Shown piece by piece: positions 1,217 to 64,000 of a DNA stretch of 64,000 bases. Source of the stretch: Schmidtea polychroa (Eukaryota). The stretch spans positions 49,724,001 to 49,788,000 of the forward strand of contig CM097885.1 in the NCBI GenBank assembly GCA_044892525.1, given 5' to 3'. Under the pieces are notes generated by a model. That model did not search any database. It saw only the letters and a program-made list of their open reading frames with translations, and was not told where the DNA came from. Positions within the stretch are counted from its first letter, which is position 1. Every line of letters starts with the position of its first letter. Both the position numbers and the translations under genes were made by a program.

Positions 1217-4200
1217 ATGTCTAATATTGGAAATAAAAATTCTGCCACCCATGGAGAACAAGAATCAACGTCTTCAGATCTTTCCGATGACCATCCATCA
1301 ACGACAACAGTTAGCACTGTGGCTGTACAGGCTGGTGATTCAAGAATAGTTTTAGCCATCTTAAAAGTTAGTTTAAAAATATTCGTGGAAACTATTATTA
1401 TAATTATTATTTAAAACCAAACTCAATAGAGTGGCAATTGGATAAAAGTAAAAATTCAAACAATGGATCCTGATCTTTATGATATTGGATTGACGACAGA
1501 GAAAGCTGAAAATCTTTTACAAACTCACAATACTTTATGTTCTAAAATAGCGGTAAAATTCTCATAAAAATTATTCAAGAAAATATTTTGTATATTTATC
1601 CCTTCAGACAAAACAGGGCCAAATTTCAGAGTTATTGTCGAGAGCCGATGACTTAGTTAGTCAGCAAACAACAGGTAGCCAATCAGATGTTTACGCGGCA
1701 ATGGCAGATTCTATGGGTCGAGCTTGGAAGGATTTGCAGAAAATATTGAATTATCGCACTCAGTTATTAGAATTAAACGTCAGATTTTGTTATTCGTTTG
1801 ATCAAGTCGATCAATTGTTAAATGAAGTAGAAAATCAGTGTTCCAAATCCAATGAATTTACCGATAAAAATGATGTCTCAGTGTTTATTCAAGTAGAAAA
1901 TTTGAATTGTTTTTTTTTCATTGATACTCGGCATAATTTTAGGAGCTAATGAAATTGAAAGATGAATTGCACAATGCCGATTCTCTATTCGACGAGAATG
2001 CCAATTGTTTTCTCGATTATTTACGAAACTTGAGTTTATTATCATCAACGGATAACTCTGGAGAAGTAACGAGAATTGTTGTCAAATCCGTAGAAGATTT
2101 AATTGGAAGCCTGATCAATCGACGATTACAAATAGAAAGTAAATGGGACAATAAAATTGATGTTTTACATTCAGAATCTTCAAACATGGATTCGGTAAGG
2201 AATTTAGAAAAGATTCTCGATTGGTTTGTGAATGTACGTTGTTTCGAGTTTAAATTAGAGTTATAATGTAATAAATATTAATAAAGGTTGGAGAGACAAG
2301 ATTAAACAACATGAAAATCGGACAAAATCTCAGAGATACAAAAGATTCCCTGGGAGATTTGATGGCTTTAATAGATGAAACAAGAATTGTACAAGACGGT
2401 CTAATTGTTATAAGTCGAACGTGCTCAACACAAAATAACTTCAACATTAATGAAAGATTGAAAATTGCTCAAAATCATTGCTCAAATTTTACTCAAAAAT
2501 TGGAAGATAAAAGGCGTTGTTTAAATCAAGCTGTGATATTTTTCAGTGAAGCAGACATTGTAAGTATTACATTCGTTGTTTATTTTTCCCTATTTGATTT
2601 ATTACGTAACAGAATTGCAGGTGAAATCATTTTCTTGCTGCTGGGATTCAATATAAATATTTATATTTTGTAATAATGATATGTAAAATTGGATGATAAC
2701 TTAAANNNNNNNNNNNNNNNNNNNNNNNNNNNNNNNNNNNNNNNNNNNNNNNNNNNNNNNNNNNNNNNNNNNNNNNNNNNNNNNNNNNNNNNNNNNNNNN
2801 NNNNNNNNNNNNNNNNNNNNNNNNNNNNNNNNNNNNNNNNNNNNNNNNNNNNNNNNNNNNNNNNNNNNNNNNNNNNNNNNNNNNNNNNNNNNNNNNNNNN
2901 NNNNNNNNNNNNNNNNNTTTAATTGAAAATAATTTCTGCATTTTAGCTGTATGACAAAACAAAAAATCTTGAACTTGAAATCATCAACAACCCAGAAAGA
3001 GAGACTTTACGAGCGGATTATTTCATGTCCCAATTGAGATCTATACAGTTACGAATGCCTGGGATTTGGAATCTCGCGAAATTGGTCGTGGAACGATTAG
3101 ATAGCTGCAGTAATGAGTTCAACAATCAAATCCTAATGGAGAAATCAATGATTAATGAAACAACAGAAAATTTAGAAAAGACCATAAATAATTTATCAAA
3201 ACTTTGTGAAAGATTTAAAAATGAAGAGAAAAATGAAGGACAACTTCATGTGATAGAAGAGAGAATTCGATCGGTTCTTATTGTTTTTGAATTATTTTTA
3301 ACGATAGTACCAATACAGTTGAAGACATGGCTACTGGAGGTTGCCTATCGAATGATGAGAGAATACATTGATTCACCAATATCAGTGCACTCGATCAATG
3401 ATCTGCTAGATCTGCACATCCGAGTTGAAACAGAATTAACATCAAAGTTTCAACAATTAACAAGTTTAAGAAATGATTTACAAACCACTTCAAGCCAGTC
3501 TTCAAATTATAGAGTTGTTGAAGTAATTACAAAATTAAACTTTCATTATAATTGTTAAACCATTATAACATTGCTTACAGCTAATACTGTATANNNNNNN
3601 NNNNNNNNNNNNNNNNNNNNNNNNNNNNNNNNNNNNNNNNNNNNNNNNNNNNNNNNNNNNNNNNNNNNNNNNNNNNNNNNNNNNNNNNNNNNNNNNNNNN
3701 NNNNNNNNNNNNNNNNNNNNNNNNNNNNNNNNNNNNNNNNNNNNNNNNNNNNTTTTATTTGTTCGATAATAATTTAATTACAATATTATAATTGATAAAA
3801 TCGGAACAATTTTCATGTCTAAAGAAACCATTTCAATTTGTTAATTAATAAAGAATAAAATAGTTGAAGTAAACTTGTCAGAACATCATATTAACGATGT
3901 CGAGAACAATATATAAAAGGTAAAGCAGGAAGCTTTCCTTAAACATATTAATAAGTCTGACAGTTAGACAATAAAGAGAAATAGAGCTTTATAATTATTT
4001 AAATTAGAACTAATTTGTGCTTGACAAAATGTAAAACAAAATTAAAAGTTTAATGAAAATATTTTTGCTTTTTTGGCTGGTTATTTTCCTGAGAAGACAA
4101 GGAAATATCCTGATGCGTACCGAGAACTAATTTAACCAATTGCGCTATATTGACGTGCCAGGCACGTCTTGGTGATTTTTTTCAGAACTGCAAGTGACGT

Positions 4201-7200
4201 GTATACCACGTCGATAGTATTTGTCGCAAAAACAAAAACGACGTGTTTGCAACGTCGGCTGACAGGCGGAACGTCATTGTTGTTGTGGATAATTATTTAT
4301 ATTCGTGTAAATTTTTTATGTAAGACCTTACCCTCGCGCTAAGCACTGGTCAAACCTCTTAGCTCGCTGACGCGGTGAGGCGTCGATGCCTTATGATACT
4401 TTATATAGTAGAGCGCGGCTCAGCTACCCAAAATTAAATCATAGCGCAAGTGGTTAAAGGATTTTTCATTTAACCATTGCAGAATAAGGCTACGCTTAAT
4501 TTACGCGGAAAGTGTTTCCTGGAAGTAAATACGTAAAATAAATTTCGTATAAATCGGATATGTAAATATATTATAATATAGTAAACCATGGGAAAAAATA
4601 TTCTTTCATTATTTCATCCTTTTATTTATGATCTTAGGTTATAGAAAACATTGATTATGAAAATTATATAAATACACTTCTTTATGAGGATCAGTTTGCC
4701 AACATACATCGTAAAATAAAATTTTTTAACAGAATGAATGTTTATTTGAAAAATGTGTTTGCTTAGGTTTCATTTTTAATGCATTCCTATCAAAAAATAA
4801 TGTCTTTATCTATTTCCTGTTCTGCTATTTTATAAAACTTAAACGAAAATACAATACAACTTTTCAAACGTAGAAGTCATCCTATTTTTGTCACTCAACT
4901 TGTTTTCCCGGACAATGTATACACGGAGCTCAGTAACTTGATACCCCCAATCACTTGTCCAGTTCTTTATCAATCTATTTGCCCATTTTATAAAGAATAT
5001 TGCATATGTAACAGGATTTTACTCATGTAAACAGTGGCGTAGCTAGAAATTTTGGGCTCCTATGCAATGAGTCATAGGTGGGCCCCCTTTACTGCATACA
5101 CAAGTGAAATAGTTGCGGAGCACCATAGCGCCGCAGGAAAAAGATTTTTGGCCCCCTTTGGAAGCACAATTGAATTAGACCAGGGTTTCCCAAACTTTTC
5201 CTGCGACGGAACACTTCGTAACTCTCGAAATTTTGATGGAACACCTTGCTTATTTTGTATGGTATGAGACCAGTGGCGTAGGCCTACCCAAGATTTTTTA
5301 AGGGGGAGGGGAGAGTGTTAATTGAAAGAAGGGCTTATAGTTACAGAGGAGTTTTGCGCCGCAGGTAAAACATCTTTTTGGGTCCTCGTTGAAAAGACAT
5401 TTTAATTAAATAATTAGAGCTCAATATACAATATAACAGTATAAATTGTTATAAAATGATAGTAGGGACAAGTGTGTATAGCCGACAAGCGAAACAATTT
5501 TTTCGACCTCTATATGAATGAGCGATTTACTTAGATAACTAAAGTTGCTTGCTTATACAGTATATTATTAGCGAGGGAGAGGCAGAGGGGATTGCATAAA
5601 TAGGTAAAATGCAGGTAAATAATGTACTTAATGCAATAAGTAAACAAAACAGTGGAGCTTTATTACATAAAACCACAAATCGATCATTTGGAGGTCCCTG
5701 TTGACTGGTGCCGACCGTGCCGTTGTTTGACATTGTTTTCTGAAGAAAATTAAGGAAACTTGGAAAAAAGGCCCCCTTGTCTTGTGGGCCCCTATGCATT
5801 GCTTACTCTTGCTATATGGTAGCTAAGTCACTCCATGTAAAAATAAGATATTAAAACAGCAAGAAAATCAAAAAAAGTTTAGTTTTCAAATAGCTGTTGA
5901 TATTATGGATTATTTGGAATCGGTATTACCGACGAGCAATGGGTACAAAGGGTATGTGTGTAATCAGTGCAAGCTAGTGACTTGGGTGTACTAGGAATTA
6001 CTCGTTCATGCTAAATAATAACAATTCACAATCCCTGATACGAAAGTATCTCAAGAGACTACCCGATTATGTCTAGTTAGGAAAACTTGTTAGTACTGCC
6101 ATTGTAGCACACATATTTGTTATTCTTCTAAGAAGTGAGCATTTACATGGAATGTCTCTCAAGAATTGAATATTATCTAGGATAATTTATTTACAAATAT
6201 AAAATATTTTATATTTTTGTAATCAATTGATTATTTAGGATAAAATATCACAATTAATGAGTGAATGGAGTCAATGCCAATATGTTGTCAATAAAAGGAT
6301 AGATTTATTCCATGAAATGCAATTCATTCTCAACCAAGTCAAAGAAGATGAAATCCAGTTGCAACTCTTTCTTGATAAATTGCTAGATTTAGATTTAGAG
6401 AAAATGTCTGACAGTCAAATTGATGAATTACAGTACAATATGAACCATATCAAGCATGAGATCAGCAATCAACAGGAAACCCTAATCCAGATTGTTAATA
6501 AGGTTTGATTGTTTGAAGGGTAATGTGCAATTGACATATTTTTATTTGAAAATTAAAGCTCATATCATTACCGGAGGAAGAATACAATGGACATAAAGAT
6601 AATATAATTCGATTTTGTCAAACTCAAATTGTTATGAACGATGACCGAATAAGTCAGTTGACAGACCACTGGAATTCAATACAAAATAATTCCAAAGACA
6701 TGAATGTTATCCGAGTTCAAATGAATGAGTTTGTTCAATGTGCCGACAAAGTAAATCATAAATTTGATTAAAAAAACTGTTAAATTTACACATAAAAATT
6801 ATTTATTCAGTTGGAGCATATGTTTCATTCAACGGGCAATTCCTATTCCAGACGAGTCGACTGCCAATCGAAAATAGAACTAGAAAACCAGAAAGAAGAT
6901 CATTTTAAAGAGCATGATTTCATTAGCCAGATGTGCGTTCTAACTAAAACGAAAGCCAATCAAATCATTGGAATGTTGAAAGCTCAAAAATCCAAAGCTC
7001 CAAAATCAACAACCAAAGGAGGAATCATTGAATTCACTTTTGAACTGGATCAACGAAATCAAAGTTTGCTGAATGATGTCAATAGACGATTGGATTCTTT
7101 GGAAATCAGTCATTCAAGATGGGAAAAATTGTGGCAAGACAGAACCAATTCACTCAGTCATAATTCATCAATGTTCAAAATGGAATCAAATGTGGAAGTA

Positions 7201-9960
7201 AACGAGAAAGAAATATTTAGAATCGAAGAAACTTTGACAAGAATTCAACACATGTTAAACAGTAGTCCAAATTTGGAAATTCTTGAAAAAATTGAACAGG
7301 AACTAATGAAAATCGAATCTACTTTACCGGTAAACAATTTTAAATTTTCTAATTTTTCTAAATGTGGACCCCAAAATTTCGGAGCTTATTGTATATTATA
7401 AATTTTTAGAAGCGATTAACCTTCGAATGAAAGTTGATAAAAATACATTTTTTTATTAAATTTATAGTTAATATTGAATAATTTCGCGGTTCTCTATGAC
7501 AGCGCAAAACTCATATAAAACAGGGGTTCCCAACCTTTTCATAGTACCGTAACCGTACGTCGTAAACTATTTGATGGCGTACCGGTAAACCTAATTTTTT
7601 AATGGGGTATAAAATGAAATGGATATTTGTAATAAAGACAAGTAACTTGGGATATATATGTATTTACTGCTAAACATATAAATAAAATATAATTATGACT
7701 TAAAAAATAGTTAGTGAGAAGGTTGGGCCTGTCTATCATTAACTAAAGAAGAAATATCGGACTCATTGTTTGTCAGTTTAAGGCGAAGATCCGAATCAAT
7801 GTATGGGTTATCGTAGTCATGTTTTGTTTTTCGCTAAACAGATTTTTAATAGATTTTTGTTTTATATATAGTAAAGTAATTCGCGTACCCAAGGTTGGGA
7901 ATCACTGATTTAAAACATCTAAATCAAATATGGAAACTACTTACTATCATCAGTAGTTAATTTCATTATTGACTAATATTTAGAATTTGCAAAATAAAAT
8001 TCTTTCTGAAACCGGCCATCATGTGATTATTCCTACAAATCAAAATGATAATTTATCAAAAAGATTATCAAATCTTGAAGATCGACTCGGAAGACTCTTT
8101 GGAAATATTGACGATACTCGATACAAAGTCACGGTTCATATAAATTTATTGGCGAAGGCACAAGAATTAGAAAGCTATTTGAGTCACATAACAATTTTCT
8201 TGGATCGAGTTAAAAGAAATATAAAGATGATAGAAGCAAATGATGATTTACGAGCGGAATTAATTGATCAAGTTAATCGTGCTGAACAACTTGCTGATTC
8301 AGAAATCAGAGACATGCAAGACATGGCAGAAAGAGCGCTACGTAAGTCTGAAATTTTTATTAACATTTTCATTGAAAACAATCTATTAAATGAATATTTC
8401 AATAATCCAAATTAATTAAAGTTTTCTCCAAAAATATTGATTATCTATAATATAATTTTCAATCTAATTCAATAGGTAAATCTAAATGAGACATCTAAAC
8501 AAACACGAAGTAAATATAAAACCAATTTATATAAAGAATTAATTTTCTACTTAATATACATTTAATTATAATTCCTTGAAAATACGAATAAATTAAATAA
8601 TCTTTAGAAAACTCATAAATCAAAATATTATATTTATGCTAAAAAAATTTTTACAATTTAAAATATTCCATTATAATATTTCAATTATAATAAATGCAGG
8701 TGATAAATTCGCGTTAATATATTACCATGATAAATATAAATTTAAATTTATAATGTAATTCAAATTAAATTGAGAAATATAAACAAAAATGAAGGGGATT
8801 CAAGAATAGTTTTAATTTTAATACTTAAATTATGAAAGCTTGTTTTGATAAATAGCTAAGAAAGTGAACTGAATTCCAGAACTTAAAATAAAAATTTACA
8901 TTTCATAAAATCTTTCTACTGTTTATTCCATAACAATAAAGAAGATAAGTAACTTTCCATTTCTATTTTCACTATTGATCAAAAATAGCAATGAATAATG
9001 AATAAAATTCTTGAGATAACCACAAGTTTTCGCCACAGATTTTTAAAGTGTGAACAATAGCTTCTAATATTACCAAATTTCTTTTCAAAATTAAATGAAG
9101 TTTGAGGTAATATCCTGAATTTTACCCATAGATATTGCCATCTAAAAGTGAGTGAAGTAAATATTTATTCATGGATTTTCAAATATTAAAATATTACCCA
9201 TCAGATCTATTTTTCCAGAAAAATCGGATTTGTAAATATAATTTTTAACAGTCAATCTAGTTTTTCAAGAGGCTCTTCATTCAATCTGCATAATATTAGT
9301 ATAAATTGAATTTTTAATAAATGTTTCGTGTATATTAAATTAAAGTATTTGTTATTTTCCAACGGGTGCTTACAACTAATTAGTAATCCTATAATTATCT
9401 CATAAATCAAATTTGTTCAAAAATTTCATTATTGTTACTAAGAACCTACAAAATTTATAATAAAATGCATTATTTTAATCATTTTGTGTAATAGATTTAT
9501 TATTTTATATCGGACTATTTTTTGGAAAAATAAATGATTTCTATGATATAAATTACATTTTACTTATTACATTTTACTTACATTTTTTTTATTTATTTTT
9601 TTAAAAGTATTTATATGAAGTTTTCAAAAATCAAGTAAAAGAATAACTTAATATTCTTATTTATACAAAAATTCTAGATAATAGAAAGTCATCTGTACTC
9701 GGAAAAGTATTTTCCTACACCAAAATAAAAGAACTAATTTTATTTACGTATCCAAATAAAAACAAATAATAATAATGATTTATAAATATATTTAGATCCC
9801 GAAGAAAGCAGAAAGTTAGAACCATTATTTGAAAAATTCAATGAAGTACGAAACAATCTAAATGAACTAGCAAAAGACGCGAAGATTAAATCGGAAGATT
9901 ATATAACGTTAGCAGGTCCCAAGCCAGGCCAGATACTTCCTCCAGCAAAATCATCAGTTG
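1217..9960 (+). CDS. N-terminal CCDC141/zormin-like spectrin-repeat (helical) region of the titin-like gene
   Basis: Exons 1217-1366, 1430-1552, 1608-1892, 1943-2233, 2287-2559, 2947-3273, 3319-3522, 6239-6502, 6559-6750, 6811-7329, 7984-8341 and 9796- splice in frame; the 3522-6239 junction spans a gap and is not confirmed. The translation [43 protein letters not shown]...|...SDVYAAMADSMGRAWKDL resembles the vertebrate CCDC141 N-terminus as I recall it. Confidence 0.8.
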
Positions 9961-56100: not shown

Positions 56101-59100
56101 AATTGTCAGATGTTGAAAATAAAGACGTGGAAGCGGATTTCAGGACGAAAGATAATAAAGGACTTCAAAATGTTTCTGAAAATGTAGAAATTAGCGACAG
56201 GCAAGAAGCCAACATACATGATGAAGAAATCGAGGAAGTAAGTCTTCAACATAAAATAGAAGAAGATGTGTTTAAAACTGAAGTAATTAATGAACAGTTA
56301 CAATTTCTAGAAGAGCAAATAATTGAAAATATTGTCGACGAAGAAATGCATAATGTTGAAGCAACGCTTGTAAAGTTAGAAGAGCAACAAACAGTTCTAT
56401 CTGAAGCAGTAGAACAAATTAAGGAGCTAGAACATGACAAAAACGAAGTTTCAGAAATCAAACAAGATTTAGTTTCTTCAGCTGTCGTGGAAGATGTTCT
56501 TGAAACCAATATTAATGAAAGTGAAGTAAAGGAACTTCATATAAGAGTTGTAGACTCAATAGAAAGAGAAGAATCAGTTGAGGATTCTTTTGAAATAGAG
56601 ATGGAATTGTCAGATGTTGAAAATGAAGACGTAGAAGCAGATTTCAAAACAAAAGACAATAAAGAACTTCAAACTCTTTCTGAACATATTGAAGTTCAGG
56701 ATGAAAATGAAACTGAAACAATCAAAGAATTTGATAAAGTTAATTTAGAAGGTAAAGTCGAAGAAAATGTGTTCAAAAAGAATATAATTGAAGAACATCC
56801 ACAATTTTTAGAAGCATTGATAGCTGATAATATTGAAGATGGAATGGTAAATAATGTTGAAACAACCATTGTAAAACCTAGAGAACAGTTAGCAGTTTTA
56901 TCTGAAGTAGTTGAACATACACAAATCCTTGATGAGAACGAAATTAAAGAGGAGATTGCTGAAATAAAACCAACAACAGCTTTCGCAGATCTTGTTAAAA
57001 ATATACCTGAAGATAAGGTCTGTCAGCATAAATCGGAAAAGCTCGACGTAAATGTTTTGGAGGAAGTGAAAATGGAAAAGGAAAGTTTGGAAACTGAGGA
57101 CGTGATCAAAGAAACAATTGAGAAAGAAGAATCGATAGAAGGCTCCTTTGAAATAGAAATGGAATTATCGGATGTCGAAGGTGAAAATGTTGAAGCAGAT
57201 TTTAAGACAAAGGAAAATCAAGAACTTCAAGTTCTTTCGGAAAATGTTGAAATTCAAGACGAACATGAAGTGGAAAAATCCAAAGAAGAATCGGATGAAG
57301 TGAATTTAGAAAGCAAAGCTGAGGAAAATGTGTTCAATATAAAGGCAATTGAAGAACATCCAAACATTTTAGAAGCGTCGATAAATGAAAATATTGCCGA
57401 AGAAGAAGTAAATACTGTTGAAGCAACTCTAGTTAAATCGGAAGAACAATTACCGGTTTTATCTGAAGTTATTGAACAAGTTGAAAAACTAGAAAAAGGT
57501 GAAATACAAAATATGCATTTGGAAACTGAAGAAGATCAAGTTGTTCCTACAACGGTTGGTTCTATGAAGGAGACTAAAGCTGAAGCATTCAAAACAGACA
57601 TTGAGAATGAATTACTGGAAGAATCGTTTGAAATTAATCTAGAATTAGAGAATGCAGAACATAGCGATGTTAAAAATGAGTTCCAAGTTAAAAATCAATA
57701 TTCTCTCCAAGAAATCTCTGAAGTTATTCCAACAATCGATGATAAAGAACTTGAAGAAATTGCTGAGATCTTGTCCTACGTAAAAGCTGAAGATAAAATT
57801 GTAGAAGATGTCTACGATCGTAATATCATTGCAGGCATTTCTGAACAGCAGATATTATTCGAAGAAAGTTTTGTGAAAGACATTGCAGAAGATGTAGCTA
57901 AATTTGTTTCGGCGATGAATGTTGTTGGAGAGGAAGTTAATAAGATTATGTCGGTCATAGTAGAACAGCGTGAAATTCTTGATTTCATTAAACTCAACGA
58001 TTTAAATATCGAAATTTCAGATGAAACAGCAAAAGAGTTCATCGTTAAAAATCAGGCAGATAATAAGGCGGTCATTATACCAGTAGAGCAATTAGAAAAC
58101 ACCACTGAAGATATCGTCCACGATCTAAAGGATCTTATTGCCGGTGAGAATTTCGAGAGAACTCTGATTAGCGACGCATTTGAGGACAAAATCTCTAAAT
58201 CCCAGCCTGAGATATTGGTGGAGAATTCTGGTGAAGATTTCGAATTTGAAATTCCTGATAGTAAAACTGACGAAGTAGATGCTGATTTCAGTTTGAAGAA
58301 ACCAACTGAAAGCATTGTGAAAATTTCAGAGAAAATTTCTAGAGAAAATACAACTGAATCCGTTGACAGCCAAAGCAAACTTGAAGAAGTTGAAGAAATG
58401 GATGACGATGATGGACTGGGAGATTCTTATTTAGATGATCGTCATGATTTGCAATCGGCAAAGAAATTCCTGCTCCAAGAAAGTCCACATGTTGTTGAAG
58501 AAGACATTTTAACCGGAAGTTTTGATTCCTTTACTGAAAGTTTGGAATATGAAGATTTTGATGATAGTAATTTTATGGAATTGAAAGAATTAAAAACATC
58601 TGAATACGGGTTTGATACTGCTCTATTCAGTAAACAACAGAGTCATGTTGATATTATTAATGAAAGGATTGTTGAAGAAATCATATCCGATACCAATGAA
58701 TTATATGACAGTGATATCGCTGAAATCGTCGAACTCGAACTAGACTCCGATGTTTTACAGTTAGCTAAGACTAGCCAAGAAGTTTTCTTCGTTAAAGAAT
58801 TGACAGATATGACATTGTCGGTAGGGAAATCTCTTCTTCTTGAATGTGAAATTACACCAACCGTTGATGTTGTCGTGGAATGGTTTAAGGTCAATATCAA
58901 TGTTTGCTATTTTAATAATAATATTATCATTATAGAATTTAACTCCCGTGATATCCAATGAGCATATTGCAATCACCTATGATCTCGGAAAATGTATTTT
59001 GATGATTGCTGAAGTTGAGGAAGAAGATTCCGGGCAATATATTTGTAAAGCTTGTTCTCGTGAGCGTAGTATTTCTACATCCAGCAATGTTACTGTGAAA

Positions 59101-62100
59101 AGTAGGGAGATTATTTTCTTTTCGAAATTTCATTATTTTGCTTTAAGACGGTACTTTAGAAGCGAAAGAGAGTGATGAAGAAACCATTGATGCTTCATTT
59201 GAAATTGATGCTGACAATAAGCAAAATACTGACGATGTAAATTCCGAATTTGCCCTTCATCCAATCGTCAAAGAGCCTTTGCCGAATGAAATATCCATTC
59301 CAGAACGTGGCAAATTACTTCTTCAGTGTGCGATCGTACAAAGCCCTGAAAACAATGTCAGCTGGTATTTAGATGGAGATTTATTAGAAAATTCGGAAAT
59401 TTATGAAATTAATAATACACCTGATGGAGTATGCCAATTAATCATCCATGAAATTTTCCCGGAGGACGAAGGATATTATTGCTGTAAAATCGAAAATCAG
59501 TTTTCAACCATCGAAACTGGCACAGATGTTCGAATTATACCGGATAGTGTTGCTGGTCAAAAACCGAAAATTGAGTCTAAATTACTTGAAAAAGCCGTTG
59601 AAGAAAATTCAAGTACTAATGACTTTTTGTTGGACCTAGAAGATGAACAACCGATTACAACAGATGCTGTCGAAGCAGTCTATGAAGGGAAATATGAAAA
59701 TCTTCCAGAAACTGAATCTATGGATGTAGATTTCAACTTGGAGCTTGATGATAGAAGTAAGAATTTTTTGTCTATTTTGGATAATTTTACCTTTCAGAAT
59801 TTTCTGTTAGAAATTTCAAATATATTTAGCATTTTAAGTGAAATAATTACTTATCTAATGCATAAGATACCAAGTAATAAAGCTGCGATGGATGGTGAAG
59901 CATTAGAAATTTAATATAATATTTTACTTATAATTTGTCAGTTAGAAATAAATAATTAAATAAATTAAATTATCAAATTATCAAATGATCAATAAACTTA
60001 TAATAATTGANNNNNNNNNNNNNNNNNNNNNNNNNNNNNNNNNNNNNNNNNNNNNNNNNNNNNNNNNNNNNNNNNNNNNNNNNNNNNNNNNNNNNNNNNN
60101 NNNNNNNNNNNNNNNNNNNNNNNNNNNNNNNNNNNNNNNNNNNNNNNNNNNNNNNNNNNNNNNNNNNNNNNNNNNNNNNNNNNNNNNNNNNNNNNNNNNN
60201 NNNNNNNNNNNNNNNNNNNNNNNNNNNNNNNNNNNNNNNNNNNNNNNNNNNNNNNNNNNNNNNNNNNNNNNNNNNATTACGTAACGTCGAGTATCGATGC
60301 CGAAAAGACTATACAAATACCTTCAACGCCAATAGATGTATCAGCAGTTCTGGAAAAGAATCAAAAAGCCAACGGAACGTGTGATACAGTGGTAATATCA
60401 TGGGAAATGCCATCAGAAAATCAAGGATCAGTTACCGATGCCATATTACAATACAGATCAAATAAAGATTCAGAATGGCAAACTGTTGATTCAGAAATGA
60501 ATGTAAACAAAAAGACTTGTACCTTACCCGTGGAATTATTATCAGAAAATTTGTCTTATGAATTTCGTTTAATCGCGGCAAATGCATTCGGTCGAAGTAA
60601 ACCATCAAAACCTTCTAATGCTTTATCATTAGGTTTAATCTTTTTAACTCTATTTGTAACTAAATTCTCATTAATATTTTCAGAAATACCACCAAAAATT
60701 ATAAAGCCATTGGAAAATATTGTGGTTAAAAATATGAATGAAAAGATTGTTTTGACCTGTGAATTGTCTAAGCCCATTGAAAAATACACCTGGCTAAAAG
60801 ACGGGTTACCTTTGATTCCTAACAAGAATCTTGAATTCACGGTTAATGATAACAAATACAGTTTGACAATCAAAAATGTTACTAAAGAAGATATTGGTTT
60901 GTATAAATTTAGTTTGGGAAAATTAATAACCGAAGGTCGTGTTGATATGCAAGGTAAAAGTTGATAATATAGTTTCTTTTATGTTCATTTTGTAATTAGT
61001 TCCTCCTCATCTTCTTGAAAATAAGAACTTCAAAGAAAGATTGATAATGAAAGTTAACAGCTCGTCTGTCATTGAGATTCCATTCATGGCATTTCCTAAG
61101 CCAAAAATATCTTGGACTTTCAAATCATTGATCAAAAAAAATGTTACAACGCCCAGATTTCGTTCAGAGGATGCTTTAGGGGGTTTAGCATGCTTGACTT
61201 TATCCAAAGTGAAGCCTGATGATGAAGGAATTTATAATGTGAACATATCTAATGAACATGGAAAGTTAGATTTATCTGTTGAAGTGGTTATTTTGGATAA
61301 GCCCAGTGAACCAGTTGATTTAAAAGTGATGGATAATCAAGGAGATAAAGTTTCAATTGCTTGGAAACCACCAGTAAGTGAGCTCAACAGACCCGAATAT
61401 CAAGTCAAAGAAACGGGACCAGTTACATACATAATAAAAATGAGAGAAATTGCAAAAAGAAAAGACATTGATTTAGGAGTTTCAATGGTGCCAACATATG
61501 AAATATCTAATCTTATTGTAAATACAAAGTATGTATTTTGTGTGGCGGCAAAAAATAATTTTGGTGAATCAAATTACGTGGAAACTGGAACTGTTGAAAC
61601 AAAATATCCGTTTTGTGTTCCAGATGCTCCAACAGAATTAAATCCACAACCAAGAAATCTGGGAGAGGTCTCACTTTCTTGGATTCCTCCATTAAAGGAT
61701 GGAGGCTCTGAGATTTTAAAATATGTAGTGGAAAAGAAATCAGAAACATCTGGTTCAAAATGGACTCTCATTCCTATTGAAATGACTGATAACAAACCAA
61801 CTTCTAACTCTTGTATTGTGAAATCTTTGAAGCCAACAATCAAAGTTCAATTTCGTGTTGCTGCGATTAATAAAGCTGGCCAGAGCCCATTTAGTTTACC
61901 GACAGAATATCTTTTACCAATATCAAAAGACAAGTTAATTCCTGGTGTACCAGAAATACAATCAATCATTCCAATTGGTCTAACAAGTGCAAATCTTTCG
62001 TGGACCGCCCCTGAAAAATCTGATTTTCATGGACCGGTAGAATATTATGAAATTGAAATGAAGGAGTTTTCTCAAACCGATTGGAAACCGTGCTTACAAA

Positions 62101-64000
62101 CTTCTCAATTATCAACAATTTTGGAAAATTTGCCATCTTCTAACAATATAATATTTCATGTTAGGGCAGTTAATAAAGCTGGCCCCAGTGAATATTCCAA
62201 ACCATCAAAACCCATTAAATTGGACAAAGGNNNNNNNNNNNNNNNNNNNNNNNNNNNNNNNNNNNNNNNNNNNNNNNNNNNNNNNNNNNNNNNNNNNNNN
62301 NNNNNNNNNNNNNNNNNNNNNNNNNNNNNNNNNNNNNNNNNNNNNNNNNNNNNNNNNNNNNNNNNNNNNNNNNNNNNNNNNNNNNNNNNNNNNNNNNNNN
62401 NNNNNNNNNNNNNNNNNNNNNNNNNNNNNNNNNNNNNNNNNNNNNNNNNNNNGAATTTATCGAAGAACCGAAAAATATTGTTTGTGAAGAAATTCCGGAA
62501 ACCATAACCTTTATTGCCGAACTTTCTCGTAAAAGTGATGATGTTAAATGGTTTAAAGGTTCTAAGAGAATATTTCCTAATAAAACAAAATTTTTATTAA
62601 CAAATGAAAATGAAAGACAACCAAAATTGGAAATAATCAAAGTAGTTCCAGAAGATATTGGCAAATATAGAATTACGGTAGAGAATTTGGAAGCAGCGGC
62701 TAATTTTGATTTAAGAGGTTTTATATAATATTTTTAATTTTTGTAAAAATAAAAATAATATTAATTTTAGTACCTCCTTCATTCATTTTATCCACTGATT
62801 TCGCAAAAACATTTGTTGTACCGATTGGATCTAACAAAACTATCTCCTTACCATTTAAAGCTTGGCCTACACCGAAAGTTAACTGGACATGTATCAGTCC
62901 AATTCAGATACCAGATAAAATGCGTTTCAGAACGAACATTAAAGAAAGTACCATTGATTTGCAAATGAATAAGTTACAAAGATTAGACTCTGGAGTTTAT
63001 GAAATCATAATAGAAAATGATTATGGTATTGCAAAATTGGAGTTAACTTTAACTGTGATAGATGTACCTGGGCCTGTGGAGGAATTGGAATACGAATTGC
63101 CTGAACAACCATCAGATGTAAAATTGAAGTGGCTAGAACCGAAAGACAATGGAGGCAGCCCAGTACTAAATTATTTATTTTCTATTGAAGAAGCCGCCCG
63201 ACTATCTACACCTATCAAAAACTCTAAATCTGTTTCTGCAAATGATGTATTAATTCCTGGATTAAAACCTGATACTGCATACACTGTTTCTGTTCAAGCC
63301 GTGAACAGTGTTGGAGTTGGTAAGTTAAATACGATAAAGTTTCAAACTAAAAAGAAAATTCAATTAAATGTCCCTGACCAACCAACTGATTTGACTATCA
63401 CAGTAACGAGTCCGAAAAGTATATCACTAAATTGGCAGGTACCAAAATATGATGGAGGATCTCCGATTTTAAGTTATATTGTTGAAAAACGACCTAAAAC
63501 ATCTCTCCTCATGAAATGGGTTCCTGTAATAACTGATAATGTTTCAAATACAAATTGTGTGATAGAAAATCTGAAAAGTGACGAGTATTCGTTTAGAGTG
63601 TCGGCTGAAAACAAAATTGGAACAAGTCGACCTTCTTCTATTGCTAGTGTTAAAATTGATACCGTAAATGACTTACCAGACAAACCGGGAAAACCATATC
63701 TTGAAAAGTCTATTGAAGGAATAATTCTTAAATGGGAAGCGCCAAAATATTTAGGAAAACCTCCATTTATTGGTTATAATATCGAGAAGAGTTGTAAAGC
63801 TAATAATAAATGGACAGCTATTAATGATACCCCTTGCGTTGAGGAGTATTACCCGGTTTCTTTAATTGTTGATAACGACGAAATATTTAGAATTGTTGCA
63901 CTGAACAAGTATGGTACAAGTTTGCCATCTGATATTTCCGACAAACCAAATATTACTCGGTCCGTTACATTTGTCAAAGAATTGGAAAATATCTACATCA
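1217..64000 (+). CDS. Giant multi-exon titin/connectin-like (sallimus/zormin-type) sarcomeric protein gene; 3' end outside the window
   Basis: Hand-spliced exons with GT-AG boundaries and matching phases join the + strand ORF fragments into spectrin-like, Ig (I-set signatures such as G.P.P.V.W and D.G.Y.C.A.N..G), repeat and Fn3 segments. Roughly 33 Ig and 7 Fn3 domains counted by eye. Continuity across N-gaps is inferred. Confidence 0.9.
4136..4453. mobile_element. piggyBac-type MITE
   Basis: TTAA at 4132-4135 and 4454-4457; 13-bp TIR ccaattgcgctat / atagcgcaagtgg with 1 mismatch. Confidence 0.8.
5032..5833. mobile_element. hAT-type MITE (CAGTGGCGTA ends), composite
   Basis: Perfect 8-bp TSD catgtaaa (5024-5031, 5834-5841); TIR cagtggcgtagct / agctaagtcactc; additional hAT left ends inside at 5181 and 5271. 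Confidence 0.8.
7521..7907. mobile_element. hAT (Charlie/Buster-like) MITE
   Basis: TIR caggggttcccaacc / ggttgggaatcactg; 8-bp TSD atataaaa / atttaaaa. Confidence 0.85.
9961..22957 (+). CDS. First Ig-domain cluster (~6 I-set Ig) of the titin-like gene, split by a 9.2-kb TE-filled intron
   Basis: Motifs APRFIRPL..PEVEWFKDG..DDSAVYSC, PQVSWFRNG, EDSGEYKC and KPTPHVTWYKNG. Exon ending 11873 (…RPTCQ) joins exon 21057-21277 (INKNDNVHSLII…) to complete one Ig domain; the next exon starts at 22366. Confidence 0.88.
12133..12457. mobile_element. hAT-type MITE (spans an N-gap)
   Basis: TIR caggcgcgtacgcagg / cctgcgtacgcgcatg; perfect 8-bp TSD tctgaaag (12125-12132, 12458-12465). Confidence 0.85.
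12978..13092 (-). repeat. 3' LTR (115 bp)
   Basis: Identical to 17428-17542; immediately preceded on the - strand by the PPT. Confidence 0.95.
13093..13102 (-). promoter_or_regulatory. Polypurine tract AGAAGGGGAG
   Basis: Lies between the pol stop (13103-13105) and the 3' LTR. Confidence 0.85.
13103..16267 (-). CDS. pol: Pol polyprotein: protease-RT-RNase H-integrase (gypsy order)
   Basis: LWDSGAS, YLDD, TDAS..AIGAV, HTEMCH..CEIC zinc finger, IDVAH…SDRG…NGLVER and YEGPF. The frame is open from 16267; the first ATG is at 16183. Confidence 0.96.
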   Translation of the reverse strand, partial: TKKQGRSHCFHFVSGVDTIISRKKRNEDMMQKMYETTDRRKWSKIVINMTAIDMLWDSGASVSVMSEKSWTKIGKPRLKQSTISLCGVFSTGMERPLGAMTIEADWNGKKRIINVIVVKDIRPDFIGGVDTMERFGIRLVEVDNIEASQVGRTYVDSQREEKALLMLGDRKNEQLDILLRKFKGIFMASTFDLGFTKVVQHEMNIVGGPVMLQPRRQPMHLEQKLDELVTDLLEARVIRKCKSAWNAPLVIGAKKDGSIRMCVDYRGLIAITEKISFPMPDTRFLLDCLADSKYFTSIDLGQAYYQVGMAKEIQEVTAFSTRQGQFCFNRLPFGLATAPATFQRIMHSMLDGILFKGVVVYLDDILVYGKDKEEHNNRLEEVFRRIQLAGLRINPEKCNLYKEELTFLGHTVSASGIKTNDKKIKEIQDAEIPVCAKQLRSFLGMTNYYRKFIKDYAKIAEPLHAATSGCEKKINWSEDCNNSFELLKTKLCEAPILDYPKMDRNFILDTDASFGAIGAVLCQAKEDGTEVVIAYGSRHLTAHEKGYCVTRKELLAIHEYVMYFKQYLYGKSFVVRTDHKALVFMRYTKKPISPQFQTWLANLSGYDFDLQYRKGEEHGNADGISRIKGMLCAQCQTRHEDAKEEKARVRHISSLQKTESMTKLLEKQQDDVDFIHMTRVLQGEEEINDLNKKKFPFNSHNNIKLEDGFLLLEKNGKDVILVPIDYSNTLVKGIHTEMCHIGVKKLISYMSNIFFWPNMQETIQNCLRVCEICCRRKIVQEKTKERLLPIISSDFLEQLVIDVAHMKNGGVYKYMLVIIDRFSKMVSLTALERQDERSIFKAILEKWIYRFGKPPNCLSDRGKNFDSGFMKTNLGRLGITHQFSSPYQHQSNGLVERTIRTVRDLLATSLAGGLGERNWAELLPRVEFCINVTQQSATGFSPFEIVFGRKINLHSTLPQTTLDTVEIHRLVRENSEKAAKRMKEMETEKRTNRCFTVGEKVLVRKEPQNRDKDGLQYEGPFVISKFLSEHQVELSDGTTKKLRRIKWLKRWAVP
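16210..17457 (-). CDS. gag: Gag with two CCHC zinc knuckles, interrupted by one in-frame TAA at 16579-16581
   Basis: ORFs 16579-17457 and 16210-16524 are in the same frame; knuckles CFCCGEKGHRRFEC and CLICGKEGHGFRDC. Confidence 0.88.
17411..17428 (-). promoter_or_regulatory. Primer-binding site TGGCGACCACGCCAAGGA (possibly tRNA-Arg(UCG)-type)
   Basis: Starts with TGG at the 5' LTR edge and is complementary to a tRNA 3' end ...CGUGGUCGCCA; the tRNA identity is inferred. Confidence 0.7.
17428..17542 (-). repeat. 5' LTR (115 bp)
   Basis: Identical to 12978-13092; termini AGTTAT…ATAACT. Confidence 0.95.
17739..19575 (+). pseudogene. hAT transposase pseudogene
   Basis: BED finger (WKYF..KCLKC..LIRHLQHVH), LDEWTS, TTDGAAVM, CYNH, CKTRWN and C-terminal QPSSVESERVFS..LDCLCF, spread over frames broken by stops and frameshifts. 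Confidence 0.92.
20690..20895 (+). mobile_element. Possible Helitron/Helentron-derived relic
   Basis: aaatttcagctcaatccgatca…cagacatgcagaca…aaagttatatag resembles 3' ends of non-autonomous Helitron families as I recall them; weak. Confidence 0.3.
23236..28884 (+). CDS. 5,649-bp phase 0-0 exon encoding 39-aa tandem repeats plus a unique Ser/Thr-rich segment
   Basis: Acceptor tctgtag at 23235 and donor gtaaat at 28885; 1883 open codons, matching the 1916-aa ORF. Confidence 0.88.
23287..27200 (+). repeat. Coding tandem array of 117-bp/39-aa units (~33 copies; the core 20 near-identical)
   Basis: Consensus (E/Q)ITPMVKQSQFLSQASTDLYHHPDVLSGYDSDKEVMNPL; period confirmed by unit starts at 23515 and 27142. 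Confidence 0.97.
29323..29564. mobile_element. piggyBac MITE
   Basis: TTAA on both sides; 14-bp TIR (t/c)cctttccagccca. Confidence 0.88.
29570..30095 (+). pseudogene. Penelope-like retroelement relic (post-RT segment)
   Basis: Translation CSEEKENYKQQLNFNKILHRNGYQ…YFYLNIPFISD resembles the PLE motif ICS…L..NGYP…LPY. Confidence 0.6.
30150..48949 (+). CDS. Second Ig-domain cluster (~20 Ig) of the titin-like gene, many short exons plus one 2.55-kb exon (44361-46910)
   Basis: In-phase junctions checked by hand, e.g. 30359/30415, 42927/44361 (…KSTE|LTCQVVGSPKP) and 46910/48720 (…GETLN|LECCYESD); canonical Ig I-set motifs throughout. Confidence 0.88.
31332..31595. mobile_element. hAT (Charlie-like) MITE
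   Basis: TIR cagtgcttctc(a/g)aa; perfect TSD ctttaaac (31324-31331, 31596-31603). Confidence 0.9.
31604..32362 (+). pseudogene. Buster/Charlie-group hAT transposase relic with right end
   Basis: SKGKILKQFWNLMRGIKHFL…, QLEIIELQ and FWSTYA fragments; right end ggctgaacaacactg followed by ctctagaa. Confidence 0.6.
32516..32740. mobile_element. MULE-type MITE
   Basis: Perfect 9-bp TSD aaaaccaat (32507-32515, 32741-32749); TIR core cgtcaaaatagcc. Confidence 0.75.
36265..36519. mobile_element. Foldback/MITE-like element with ~55-bp inverted repeats
   Basis: 36265-36320 is the near reverse complement of 36464-36519; TSD unclear. Confidence 0.6.
38397..38646. mobile_element. Tc1/pogo(Tigger)-type MITE
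   Basis: TA TSD; TIR cacccatacctcg / cgaggtatgggtg. Confidence 0.88.
38700..38779. repeat. (TA)n followed by (TG)n microsatellite
   Basis: Direct read. Confidence 0.97.
40805..41006. mobile_element. piggyBac-type MITE
   Basis: TTAA on both sides; 14-bp TIR ccgtttgc(g/a)gacgg. Confidence 0.88.
41038..41098. repeat. (TA)n microsatellite
   Basis: Direct read. Confidence 0.97.
41804..42091. mobile_element. hAT (Charlie-like) MITE
   Basis: TIR cagtgtttctca; TSD ctctaagc / gtctaaac. Confidence 0.82.
43266..43510. mobile_element. hAT (Charlie-like) MITE
   Basis: TIR caggagttcttaacct / aggttaagaaccactg; TSD gcctagaa / gtctagaa. Confidence 0.85.
47499..47635. repeat. ~137-bp hairpin repeat (46-bp arms), member of a family dispersed in this window
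   Basis: Arms …ttgaagactataaatcagtaatatatcgat / atcgatatattactgatttatagtcttcaa…; related sequence at ~40180-40350, 47655-47800, 29100-29130 and (reverse) 38650-38697. Confidence 0.75.
48131..48394. mobile_element. Degenerate hAT (Charlie-like) MITE
   Basis: Ends caacaatactcagcc / ggttgagtatggtta, with ctctaa-containing flanks and internal gcgggccgc/gcggccc motifs. Confidence 0.6.
48994..58889 (+). CDS. 9.9-kb exon: one Ig domain, then a ~3,000-aa Glu/Ile/Val/Lys-rich (PEVK-like but Pro-poor) elastic region
   Basis: Acceptor tcgtag at 48993 and donor gtcaat at 58890; corresponds to the 3291-aa ORF. Confidence 0.9.
50205..51560 (+). repeat. Degenerate 41-aa (123-bp) coding repeat, ~11 units
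   Basis: EQxEH(L/I)EE-type motif at 50328, 50457, 50580, 50703, 50826, 50949, 51072, 51195, 51315 and 51438, with a weaker copy at 50205. Confidence 0.8.
51918..54237 (+). repeat. 558-bp/186-aa coding tandem repeat, 4 near-identical copies plus a partial; degenerate copies continue to ~57750
   Basis: Unit starts at 51918, 52476, 53034, 53592 and 54150; the EES(V/I)EDSFEIEMEL..VEADF motif recurs downstream. Confidence 0.97.
58936..64000 (+). CDS. Ig/Fn3 region of the titin-like gene (Ig,Ig,[gap],Fn3,Ig,Ig,Fn3x3,[gap],Ig,Ig,Fn3x3,Ig...)
   Basis: Exons 58936-59101, 59160-59756, ~60281-60632, 60684-60953, 61000-62230, 62453-62717 and 62771-64000. The last is open to the window end and absent from the ORF track. 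Fn3 motifs include W.PP..DGGS.I..Y.VEK and Y.FRV.A.N..G.S. Confidence 0.88.

Follow-up and report, generated by a model that had tools for sequence, protein, structure and literature searches.

In the fly, the A-band role falls to projectin; Sls itself carries a small number of Fn3 domains and is not known to include a kinase. The repeat regions of C. elegans TTN-1, said to be lineage-specific tandem-repeat springs, and its domain counts were reportedly described by Flaherty et al. in 2002. TTN-1, which coexists with twitchin, combines many Ig domains with some Fn3 domains, and an Ig-Fn-kinase module lies close to its C-terminus (PMC4472019). Zormin combines four SPEC repeats with Ig domains, and there are transcripts that cover both zormin and sls, or both CCDC141 and TTN (PMC12198301). 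The joining of a spectrin-repeat head (CCDC141/zormin) to titin was published in 2025 as "connectitin" by Hanashima et al. (PMC12198301), for whom connectitin is the ancestral SESTD1-CCDC141-titin unit, present as a single gene in cnidarians and placozoans and postulated for the bilaterian ancestor. Here, we analyzed a 64,000-nucleotide stretch of the Schmidtea polychroa genome (the window) and the sequence downstream of it.

Organization of the gene

The window carries most of the length of a titin-family gene that is real, transcribed, and spliced, and the analysis confirmed, in its place, every element of the plus-strand gene named in a preliminary description. This single gene runs on the plus strand from approximately position 1,217 to approximately 24.6 kb beyond the window end (approximately 88.6 kb). 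A crude splice model gave a gene span of approximately 87 kb, approximately 83 exons (80 or more), and a protein of approximately 16,040 aa, with approximately 10,850 aa inside the window, in line with the more than 10,000 aa proposed earlier. This model, the second of two, recovered all five RNA junctions open to comparison and serves as a size estimate rather than an annotation: it calls hAT ORFs (17858–19491) exons, misses short in-frame introns, and places gaps in introns by construction. The first model was dropped because short introns had been overlooked. Introns are mostly 44–60 nt long, with GT..AG limits.

Our own HMMs gave 59 Ig and 35 Fn3 hits over the whole gene, corresponding to approximately 42 Ig and 33 Fn3 domains, counted as domain equivalents; many Ig domains are split by short introns. 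The Pfam scan proposed in the preliminary description found I-set and fn3 well over the cut-offs in window and downstream exons. As in other members of the titin/connectin superfamily, there are long tandem I-set arrays (231 bits on the single exon 44356–46911) and Fn3 arrays mixed with Ig (fn3, 98–170 bits per exon). Within the window, the helical head is followed by approximately 27–32 Ig domains, interrupted by an exon of 39-residue repeats, then by an acidic exon and Ig-Ig-Fn3-Fn3-Fn3 blocks. Past the window come Fn3-only arrays, an Ig-Ig-Fn3-kinase-Ig module, and approximately five tail Ig domains (Table 1).

Table 1. Features of the titin-like gene, in window coordinates (numbering continues past the window end)
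Feature	Position	Strand	Basis
Head, approximately 10–13 exons, approximately 1,000–1,200 helical spectrin-like residues	1217–8341	+	ORF pieces, splice model
Helix-to-Ig exon: last head helix, Pro-rich linker, first strands of Ig 1	9796–10080	+	Translation
First Ig block, approximately 5–6 Ig in short exons, reaching gap 12151–12354	10132–12150	+	Own HMM
Long transposon-loaded intron	12355–21056	+	Pfam
Three exons coding for two Ig domains, with gap 21949–22108 in a modelled intron	21057–22999	+	Own HMM, splice model
Single 5.6-kb exon, approximately 1,880 aa, 39-residue Ser/Thr/Gln-rich repeats	23236–28884	+	Translation, TRF
Second Ig array, approximately 20 Ig, including 7-Ig exon 44361–46910	30150–48949	+	Own HMM
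9.9-kb acidic exon	48994–58889	+	Translation; 3' end 58889 by RNA contigs
Two RNA-confirmed exons, 58936–59101 and 59148–59756	58936–59756	+	RNA contigs, Pfam I-set, frame check
Intron holding gap 60011–60275	59757–60275	+	Donor GTAAG at 59757; acceptor under N run
Start of Ig/Fn3 region: Fn3, then Ig-Ig-Fn3-Fn3-Fn3 blocks	60276–64000, onward to approximately 88.6 kb	+	Pfam fn3/I-set, domain map
Ig/Fn3 exons	60276–60632, 60684–60953, 61000–62229, 62453–62717, 62771 onward	+	Introns by RNA contigs

The helical head

The ORF pieces from 1187 to 8412 translate into helical sequence, with a candidate start codon at 1217; exon limits in the head are those of the splice model. The region of exon 1608–1907 (1557–1946) matched Pfam Spectrin weakly (E 0.01), and this exon matched beta-spectrin chains in the PDB (E 0.0086 and 0.018). 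The AlphaFold (AF2) model of exon 2947–3555, made from a query that contains a 45-nt in-frame intron (3274–3318), was all-helix at low confidence (pLDDT 46.6), a value that did not justify a fold search. Language-model look-alikes of the head included the SESTD1, CCDC141, and kalirin spectrin clusters (0.90–0.91), which we treat as a lead only. A genomic contig of a relative (L028) keeps the coding parts of the head at 59–64% amino acid identity, and its frame breaks at the 45-nt intron near 3274–3318.

A phmmer search with exon 2947–3555 against 1.84 billion representative proteins returned one 95-aa fragment, from a relative, and nothing else, and Pfam up to E 0.1 gave no Spectrin_7 or DUF7799 match on the head. 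An atlas look-alike search with exon 6796–7398 gave no match, and a PDB search with exon 7984–8340 gave noise alone. Exon 9796–10080 codes both for the last head helix and for the beginning of the first Ig domain, which resumes at 10132; the sequence itself thus ties the head to the Ig array within one exon. In zormin and CCDC141, spectrin repeats directly precede Ig domains; the position of the head and the helix-to-Ig exon fit this layout, with weak spectrin similarity and a low-confidence AF2 model. Of the zormin/CCDC141-like spectrin head proposed earlier, the helical, weakly spectrin-like character and the position stood, whereas phmmer and Pfam detected no sequence homology tying it to CCDC141 or zormin; it is by position only that the head can be called CCDC141.

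Ig arrays, repeat exon, and acidic exon

Our HMM map placed approximately 27 Ig domain equivalents over 10122–59512 (overall range approximately 27–32), compatible with the approximately 29 counted earlier. Many of these domains are cut by 44–60 nt introns, with HMM coordinates matching on either side; in the first Ig block, hits run from 10122 to 11864 and the halves are separated by introns of 40–51 nt. In the long intron, minus-strand matches to RVT_1, RNase H, and rve at 13103–16183 mark a gypsy-type element, and plus-strand matches to zf-BED and hAT dimerisation at 17718–19569 mark BED/hAT remnants. Three gaps (34579–34756, 35471–35747, and 47236–47463) sit within the second Ig array.

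The 39-residue repeat exon, located as described earlier, contains 35 motif copies, arranged as 31 in exact 39-residue register, a 409-aa insert, and four more. TRF reported periods of 117, 234, 351, and 468 nt. No homologues of this exon were found among proteins of 1,056–3,361 aa. A Pfam Talin_VBS2 match on it was rejected as spurious, being the sum of many weak repeat matches with no single significant stretch.

The Glu-rich exon was likewise recovered, at 9.9 kb. It opens with one Ig domain (49230–49439) and closes with the first half of another; between them lies an acidic stretch of approximately 3,000 residues, composed of 24% Glu, 6% Asp, and 1.8% Pro among others. The ORF that contains it (48918–58958) has 3,347 aa with 23–24% Glu. 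The acidic segment includes approximately 11 units of 186 residues, four of which are 95–100% identical. An AF2 model of one unit, with its copies as the alignment, consisted of isolated helices with no fold (pLDDT 57.9, pTM 0.18). Minus-strand ORFs in this exon (e.g., 51905–54274) were rejected as genes because they mirror the GAA-rich coding sequence. With 1.8% Pro, the segment does not resemble the PEVK region of vertebrate titin; because its composition is not PEVK-like, a spring role would be assigned to it by analogy.

Transcript evidence from the acidic exon into the Ig/Fn3 region

The two exons downstream of the acidic exon (58936–59756) code for the second Ig half and one complete Ig domain, joined by an acidic linker and followed by an acidic tail. 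RNA contigs X1 (11,101 nt, study P1) and X2 and X3 (from a second study, P2) revealed GT..AG joints at 58887/58934, 59101/59148, 59753/60276, 60630/60682, 60951/60998, and 62715/62769, in aligner coordinates from which the exact exon and intron limits differ by a few nucleotides. A DNA run, X15, had none of these six joints and covered both flanks of gaps 60011–60275 and 62231–62452. At the joint from 59753 to 60276, the three intervening RNA letters equal the genome's next three letters with one difference, and therefore no exonic sequence is hidden in gap 60011–60275. Gap 62231–62452 was crossed by RNA contigs with 11 letters between the sides; these were kept as N/X, and no gap letters were filled in. 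The spliced sequence from 58302 to 64000 is an open frame of 1,575 codons, in frame across both gaps.

These observations support the acidic exon and the Fn3 block as one transcription unit. The preliminary description had allowed for transcripts that end before 60280; RNA contigs from two studies instead splice across this point in frame. The single reading frame that it drew through all elements holds, by RNA splicing, from the acidic exon into Fn3, and upstream of approximately 54 kb it follows the splice model. RNA contigs were compared across two of the nine gaps (60011–60275 and 62231–62452). The other seven (2706–2917, 3594–3752, 12151–12354, 21949–22108, 34579–34756, 35471–35747, and 47236–47463) are introns in the splice model only and may conceal exon parts or frame changes; exon parts may be concealed at 12151, 34579, and 35471 because Ig halves flank these gaps.

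Fn3 arrays and kinase

The Ig-Ig-Fn3x3 blocks noted earlier occupy 60389–65438 by Pfam and our HMMs. There are approximately four of them, with partial positional similarity to one another, followed by Fn3-only arrays that bring the Fn3 domains to approximately 33 in all. As read from the sequence, this pattern is neither the A-band super-repeat of vertebrate titin (7 and 11 domains) nor the twitchin periodicity. The Fn3 arrays are conserved in other flatworms: a 2,697-aa protein of a relative (P0002) showed 88% identity and was colinear with exons 67680–76917, and a protein of the monogenean Protopolystoma (P0054) was colinear across intron 71490/72181 with 32–34% identity.

A downstream kinase, for which a check had been proposed, was present. 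Near the C-terminus, as is typical of the titin superfamily, an Ig-Ig-Fn3-kinase-Ig module spans 79.7–85.0 kb (Ig at 79704 and 79992, Fn3 at 80289, kinase exons at 82.4–84.6 kb, and Ig at 84782). The kinase exons matched Pfam Pkinase weakly (24.7 and 21.7 bits); in the PDB, the best match was STK17A (E 5.5e-6), followed by titin kinase (1TKI/4JNW, 8e-6) and twitchin (5e-4), and the kinase tail plus Ig aligned with titin 6YGN. Comparison by eye with pieces of the twitchin kinase exons of the same genome showed VAK replaced by ITE, HLDLKPEN by HLGIE..PKN, and DFG by PSP, with loss of the Gly loop. The domain thus departs from a catalytically competent kinase (VAIK Lys, HRD Asp, DFG), a feature not needed for superfamily membership, and is predicted to be a catalytically dead pseudokinase.

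A separate canonical twitchin/projectin-type gene was found on the same chromosome at approximately 252.5 Mb, 202 Mb from the titin-like gene. It shows the Fn3-Fn3-Ig pattern and an intact kinase with VAK, HLD, DFG, and the Gly loop (59.9 and 50.7 bits per exon); the titin-like gene has neither this periodicity nor an active kinase. Because the genome has this separate gene, the sallimus and projectin roles are not merged in the titin-like gene, and the merger proposed in the preliminary description has to be given up.

Comparison with related genes

Like connectitin, the flatworm gene unites Ig domains with a kinase downstream of them, and a weakly spectrin-like head precedes both; it differs in that no SEC14/SESTD1 part was found. 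All CRAL_TRIO_2 (SEC14-type) matches in the genome lay on contig C3 and none near the titin-like gene, in an exon-by-exon search that a divergent domain can escape, and the 10 kb upstream of the gene contained no long ORF. The full connectitin arrangement is therefore absent. RhoGEF, PH, and SH3 domains were not seen in the Pfam-scanned subset of exons. As to whether the architecture had already been described, the joining of a spectrin head to titin is published as connectitin (PMC12198301).

TTN-1 and the predicted flatworm protein are both giant protostome muscle proteins with Ig, Fn3, kinase, and lineage-specific repeats, beside a twitchin. The flatworm gene, however, is approximately threefold richer in Fn3 domains, some of which form Fn3-only arrays, and it has a helical spectrin-like head, 39-aa and 186-aa repeats for which no homologues were found, and a kinase without catalytic residues. 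With Drosophila sallimus (zormin/kettin/Sls) and crayfish I-connectin, it shares an N-terminal spectrin-like part, Ig arrays, and putative acidic springs at one locus, but in the flatworm the spring part is spliced to an Fn3-rich part of approximately 5,000 residues with a pseudokinase. Vertebrate and amphioxus titin likewise combine an Ig-rich spring, an Fn3-rich part, and Ig-Ig-Fn3-kinase-Ig (A168-A170, TK, M1) in one polypeptide; the flatworm gene lacks their 7- and 11-domain A-band super-repeats and PEVK composition, and its head lies within the gene, whereas in vertebrates CCDC141 sits next to the titin gene as a gene of its own. The titin-like gene and the flatworm's own twitchin have the same C-terminal layout, Ig-Ig-Fn3-kinase-Ig(5-6), although the former has no Fn3-Fn3-Ig periodicity and its kinase is dead.

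Alternative explanations

We consider it very probable that the locus is a flatworm titin/connectin-family gene, the counterpart of sallimus/I-connectin and TTN-1, alongside a separate twitchin gene. The head and first Ig domains could nevertheless form a separate zormin/CCDC141-like product of a locus organized like sls, with the giant filament made from an internal promoter and head and kinase never sharing a molecule. In Drosophila, sls yields zormin and kettin as distinct products, and CCDC141 stands next to TTN as an independent gene (PMC12198301); the RNA evidence begins at approximately 54 kb, short of the head, and the transposon-filled intron (12355–21056) could house an internal start. 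However, exon 9796–10080 links helix to Ig, in-phase short introns run on into the Ig array, neither a long open frame nor a terminator-like break lies between the parts, and alternative isoforms are compatible with a full-length form, so that we regard two never-joined products as unlikely.

The N run at 60011–60275 coincides precisely with the switch from Ig/acidic to Fn3-rich architecture, where a sallimus-like gene ending at approximately 59.9 kb might have been read together with a twitchin/projectin-like neighbour starting at 60,276; titin-family genes are prone to local duplication (PMC12198301). Three RNA contigs from two studies splice from 59756 to 60276 in frame, one of them spanning approximately 54.2 to 66.3 kb, and the genuine twitchin gene is at a distance of 202 Mb, which makes two neighbours highly improbable. 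Scaffolding over nine N runs could also have joined pieces of several Ig/Fn3 genes, since nine gaps occur in 64 kb and repetitive Ig/Fn3 domains are prone to mis-joins, but independent RNA contigs pass two gaps colinearly, a relative's protein and the monogenean protein are colinear for 7–9 kb downstream, domain halves match over short introns throughout, and DNA run X15 is present on both flanks of 60011–60275 and 62231–62452. Such an artefact seems to us highly improbable. A single titin/connectin-family gene is the reading we follow below; it represents a known family in an unusually complete flatworm form and is no new kind of system or mechanism.

Proposed role and significance

By comparison with titin, sallimus, TTN-1, and twitchin, the protein would serve in muscle as an elastic scaffold filament. 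It may be anchored at the dense body (the Z-disc equivalent) or at the actin side by its head together with the N-terminal Ig domains. The chains of Ig domains, the 39-residue repeats, and the polyanionic segment, taken to be unfolded, would act as springs in series, an arrangement well matched to the extreme changes in length that flatworm muscle undergoes. The Fn3-rich third would run along the thick filament, and the dead kinase may be a docking or strain-sensing module rather than an enzyme. Shorter isoforms are likely, as with zormin and kettin in flies. Since flatworm muscle is entirely non-striated (PMC5167519), the span of the half-sarcomere suggested in the preliminary description is doubtful.

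For bilaterians, Hanashima et al. (2025) consider a protostome split into I-connectin and projectin, a chordate fusion of two genes, and loss followed by regained function (PMC12198301). The flatworm gene, with its head, springs, long Fn3 part, and kinase beside a separate twitchin, is a concrete data point for these scenarios and supplies domains for proper phylogenies. It is possible, though we hold this tentatively, that this protostome gene keeps the ancestral bilaterian layout, with a CCDC141-like spectrin head, an I-band-type spring, an Fn3-rich part for the thick filament, and a kinase in one transcription unit beside a separate twitchin. If so, the paralogy of titin and twitchin would be old, the Fn3/kinase third would have disappeared from arthropod sallimus, and there would be no need to invoke either a protostome split or a chordate fusion; animals without their former striation would have retained a complete titin and rebuilt its springs.

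Brunet et al. (2016; PMC5167519) noted that it was not known if the secondarily smooth muscle of flatworms continues to express titin. Our analysis shows, from RNA contigs, that a complete giant titin-like gene is transcribed and spliced in a flatworm, and this gene may be expressed in muscle. Because RNAi is routine in planarians, the 39-aa and 186-aa repeat systems and the dead kinase can be tested there, and they could reveal the workings of an elastic filament in the absence of sarcomeres.

Extent and splicing of the gene

The region scanned comprised the window (66% A+T, nine N runs) and its flanks, 30 kb on the upstream side and 50 kb on the downstream side. Ig and Fn3 HMMs that we built from Pfam-confirmed seeds and ran over all forward-strand pieces located Ig and Fn3 domains from 10,122 to approximately 88,555 (window coordinates) and none past that, so a single locus extends beyond the window, which contains its first two thirds. 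The forward-strand stop-to-stop ORF pieces include exons of 1,921, 852, and 3,347 codons, and the head, Ig domains, 39-residue repeat, acidic exon, and Ig/Fn3 region named in the preliminary description were all present where it had placed them.

Contigs from sequencing runs X1 (study P1) and X2/X3 (study P2) skip GT..AG introns of 46–53 nt that are retained in the DNA run X15; X1 and X2/X3 were therefore read as RNA. A single 11,101-nt contig of X1 extends from ~54.2 kb, within the acidic exon, to ~66.3 kb. Transcripts ending before 60280 had been envisaged as evidence against a single gene, but X1 and X2/X3 contigs splice 59756 to 60276 in frame. The RNA joint 59753 to 60276 has three extra letters, which apart from one mismatch are the genomic letters that come next, just ahead of GTAAG; this defines the intron as 59757–60275 and makes the gap 60011–60275 entirely intronic. 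The gap 62231–62452 is spanned by RNA with 11 letters between both sides. By phase arithmetic and translation, the RNA-supported product of 58302–64000 reads open over 1,575 codons, unknown letters being given as X. The RNA contigs cover sequence from ~54 kb onward, including these two of the nine gaps.

A splice model based on dynamic programming with a short-intron prior recovered all five testable RNA junctions and, once transposon-derived false exons were taken out, comprised 83 exons and ~16,040 aa, with ~10,850 aa within the window. The ORFs that it called exons in the hAT/BED region were rejected as transposon remnants. Two proteins support the downstream joins: one of 2,697 aa from a relative (P0002, 88% identity) is colinear with exons 67680–76917, and P0054, from the monogenean flatworm Protopolystoma, is colinear across intron 71490/72181 at 32–34% identity. 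Among named proteins, the best colinear matches came from flatworms. The interpretation in the preliminary description is partly supported: its parts are combined in one spliced gene, as RNA shows from the acidic exon into the Fn3 block, and this gene is a titin-family member with a variant layout. Other features, of the locus and beyond it, are listed in the table; the (AAT)n runs, which lie in introns or where the gene ends at its 3' side, are probably simple repeats and not coding.

Features other than the titin-like exons (window coordinates unless stated)
Feature	Position	Strand	Remarks
Gypsy-type LTR retrotransposon	12978–17542	minus	in intron; carries pol ORF
pol ORF	13103–16183	minus	open, 1,026 aa; protease, RVT_1, RNase H, integrase
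Second ORF of gypsy-type element	16579–17457	minus	292 aa; no Pfam match
BED zinc finger and hAT dimerisation remnants	17718–19569	plus	DNA transposon, same intron
Long (AAT)n run	69062–69340 (downstream piece L002, 5062–5340)		read as poly-Asn ORF
Long (AAT)n run	88634–88999 (downstream piece L011, 6634–6999)		read as poly-Asn ORF
Reverse-transcriptase-like fragment	91203–91613 (downstream piece L004, ~7203–7613)		just past gene end; motif by eye
Twitchin/projectin-type gene	G000:C1 (CM097885.1) ~252,493,000–252,540,000 (pieces L016–L027)	minus	Fn3-Fn3-Ig pattern, intact kinase

Domain organization

The ORF pieces of the head are visibly helical, and the AF2 model of exon 2947–3555 is all-helix (pLDDT 46.6). 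Pfam Spectrin matched 1557–1946 weakly (E 0.01, 16.7 bits), and the top two PDB matches of exon 1608–1907 were beta-spectrin chains (E 0.0086 and 0.018); by these matches, the head appears only weakly spectrin-like. Atlas look-alikes of exon 2947–3555 (0.90–0.91), taken as a lead only, included SESTD1, CCDC141, kalirin-like, plectin, and MSP300 spectrin-repeat clusters. Its sole phmmer match was a 95-aa fragment (63% identity) encoded on a 913-nt genomic contig from a relative; the contig keeps both coding parts at 59–64% identity and shifts frame at a 45-nt GT..AG intron. The corresponding intron in the window, 3274–3318, stays open in frame, so this 203-codon "exon" is really two exons. Because the relative conserves the coding parts and changes frame at the intron, the head is, on this comparison, real conserved coding sequence. 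Hidden in-frame introns are possible in this genome's long ORFs and weaken searches with whole ORF pieces. The proposed zormin/CCDC141 likeness gained no sequence tie from Pfam, PDB, or phmmer against 1.84 billion representatives. One exon, 9796–10080, encodes the final helix and, after a linker, the opening strands of the first Ig domain, physically joining the helical part to the Ig array.

Exon 23236–28884 encodes 35 copies of the 39-residue repeat motif, 31 of them in exact register. The acidic exon encodes one Ig domain and then ~3,000 residues (24% Glu, 1.8% Pro) built from ~11 units of 186 residues, with 95–100% identity among four of the units; AF2, with the segment's own copies as alignment, predicted isolated helices and no fold (pLDDT 57.9, pTM 0.18). 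Minus-strand ORFs in this exon (51905–54274 and neighbours, up to 789 aa) mirror the GAA-rich coding repeats and were rejected as genes. The near-identical 186-aa units and exact 39-aa register indicate putative springs that expanded recently and lineage-specifically. Unlike these repeats, the Ig and Fn3 domains compared in the Fn3-rich part, 20–46% identical among themselves, are old.

Pfam confirmed I-set and fn3 in the window's last 4 kb. The Fn3 part opens with approximately four Ig-Ig-Fn3-Fn3-Fn3 blocks, across which the first Ig resembles the first and the second the second, with no clean periodicity among the Fn3 positions. An Fn3-only array of ~1,600 residues follows, its 1,598-codon exon 72127–76920 (downstream piece L010) giving fn3 and no Ig family in Pfam. 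Comparable Fn3-only fragments occur in a planarian-like relative (52% identity), Protopolystoma (32–34%), and the limpet Lottia gigantea (LOTGIDRAFT_176120); such arrays may be general in lophotrochozoan titin-like genes.

Looking downstream for a kinase, as the preliminary description had suggested, revealed kinase exons past the window end with their catalytic motifs replaced. The 3' domain order in our HMM map is Ig-Ig-Fn3-kinase-Ig, then about five Ig domains; a module of this type is a hallmark of titin, twitchin, and TTN-1 (PMC4472019). In the PDB, the kinase exons matched STK17A best (E 5.5e-6), followed by titin kinase (E 8e-6) and, further behind, twitchin (5e-4); the stretch from the kinase tail into the Ig could be aligned with titin 6YGN. 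By-eye comparison with the same genome's twitchin kinase exons showed that the Gly loop is lost and that ITE, HLG, and PSP stand in place of the VAIK lysine, the HRD aspartate, and DFG; the C-lobe remains conserved.

A separate twitchin gene

The 120 kb examined 202.7 Mb downstream on the same chromosome contained 25 Ig and 21 Fn3 hits from a gene that ends with Ig-Ig-Fn3-kinase-Ig(5-6). Against Pkinase, its kinase exons reached 59.9 and 50.7 bits, and the motifs HLDLKPEN, DFG, and APE are intact. With this canonical twitchin encoded separately, the window gene does not replace twitchin/projectin, and the suggestion that it merges sallimus and projectin roles falls. The window gene is the other giant of this genome and corresponds to sallimus, I-connectin, or TTN-1.

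Discussion

Hanashima et al. (2025) termed SESTD1-CCDC141-titin "connectitin", equated zormin with CCDC141, described single-gene forms in cnidarians and placozoans, cited transcripts spanning zormin-sls and CCDC141-TTN, and did not decide between the splitting of one gene in protostomes and the fusion of two in chordates (PMC12198301). No SEC14-type domain was found near the titin-like gene. Of the merged-architecture connectin proposed in the preliminary description, the joining of the parts in one spliced gene stands, but the gene coexists with twitchin and the head-plus-titin arrangement was already published (PMC12198301).

If the protein works as titin, sallimus, and TTN-1 do, it would form an elastic scaffold, held at dense bodies or on actin through its N-terminal head and Ig domains. 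Stretch would be taken up by three putative springs in series, namely the Ig chains, the 39-residue repeats, and the acidic segment. The Fn3-rich third would run along the thick filament, and the dead kinase could serve for docking or strain sensing.

According to Brunet et al. (2016, PMC5167519), striated muscle has been lost entirely in flatworms, and whether such muscle expresses titin was then unknown; the literature that we searched contained no published description of flatworm titin architecture. The value of the gene is that it offers one data point on how titin evolved and on elasticity in muscle that lacks sarcomeres.
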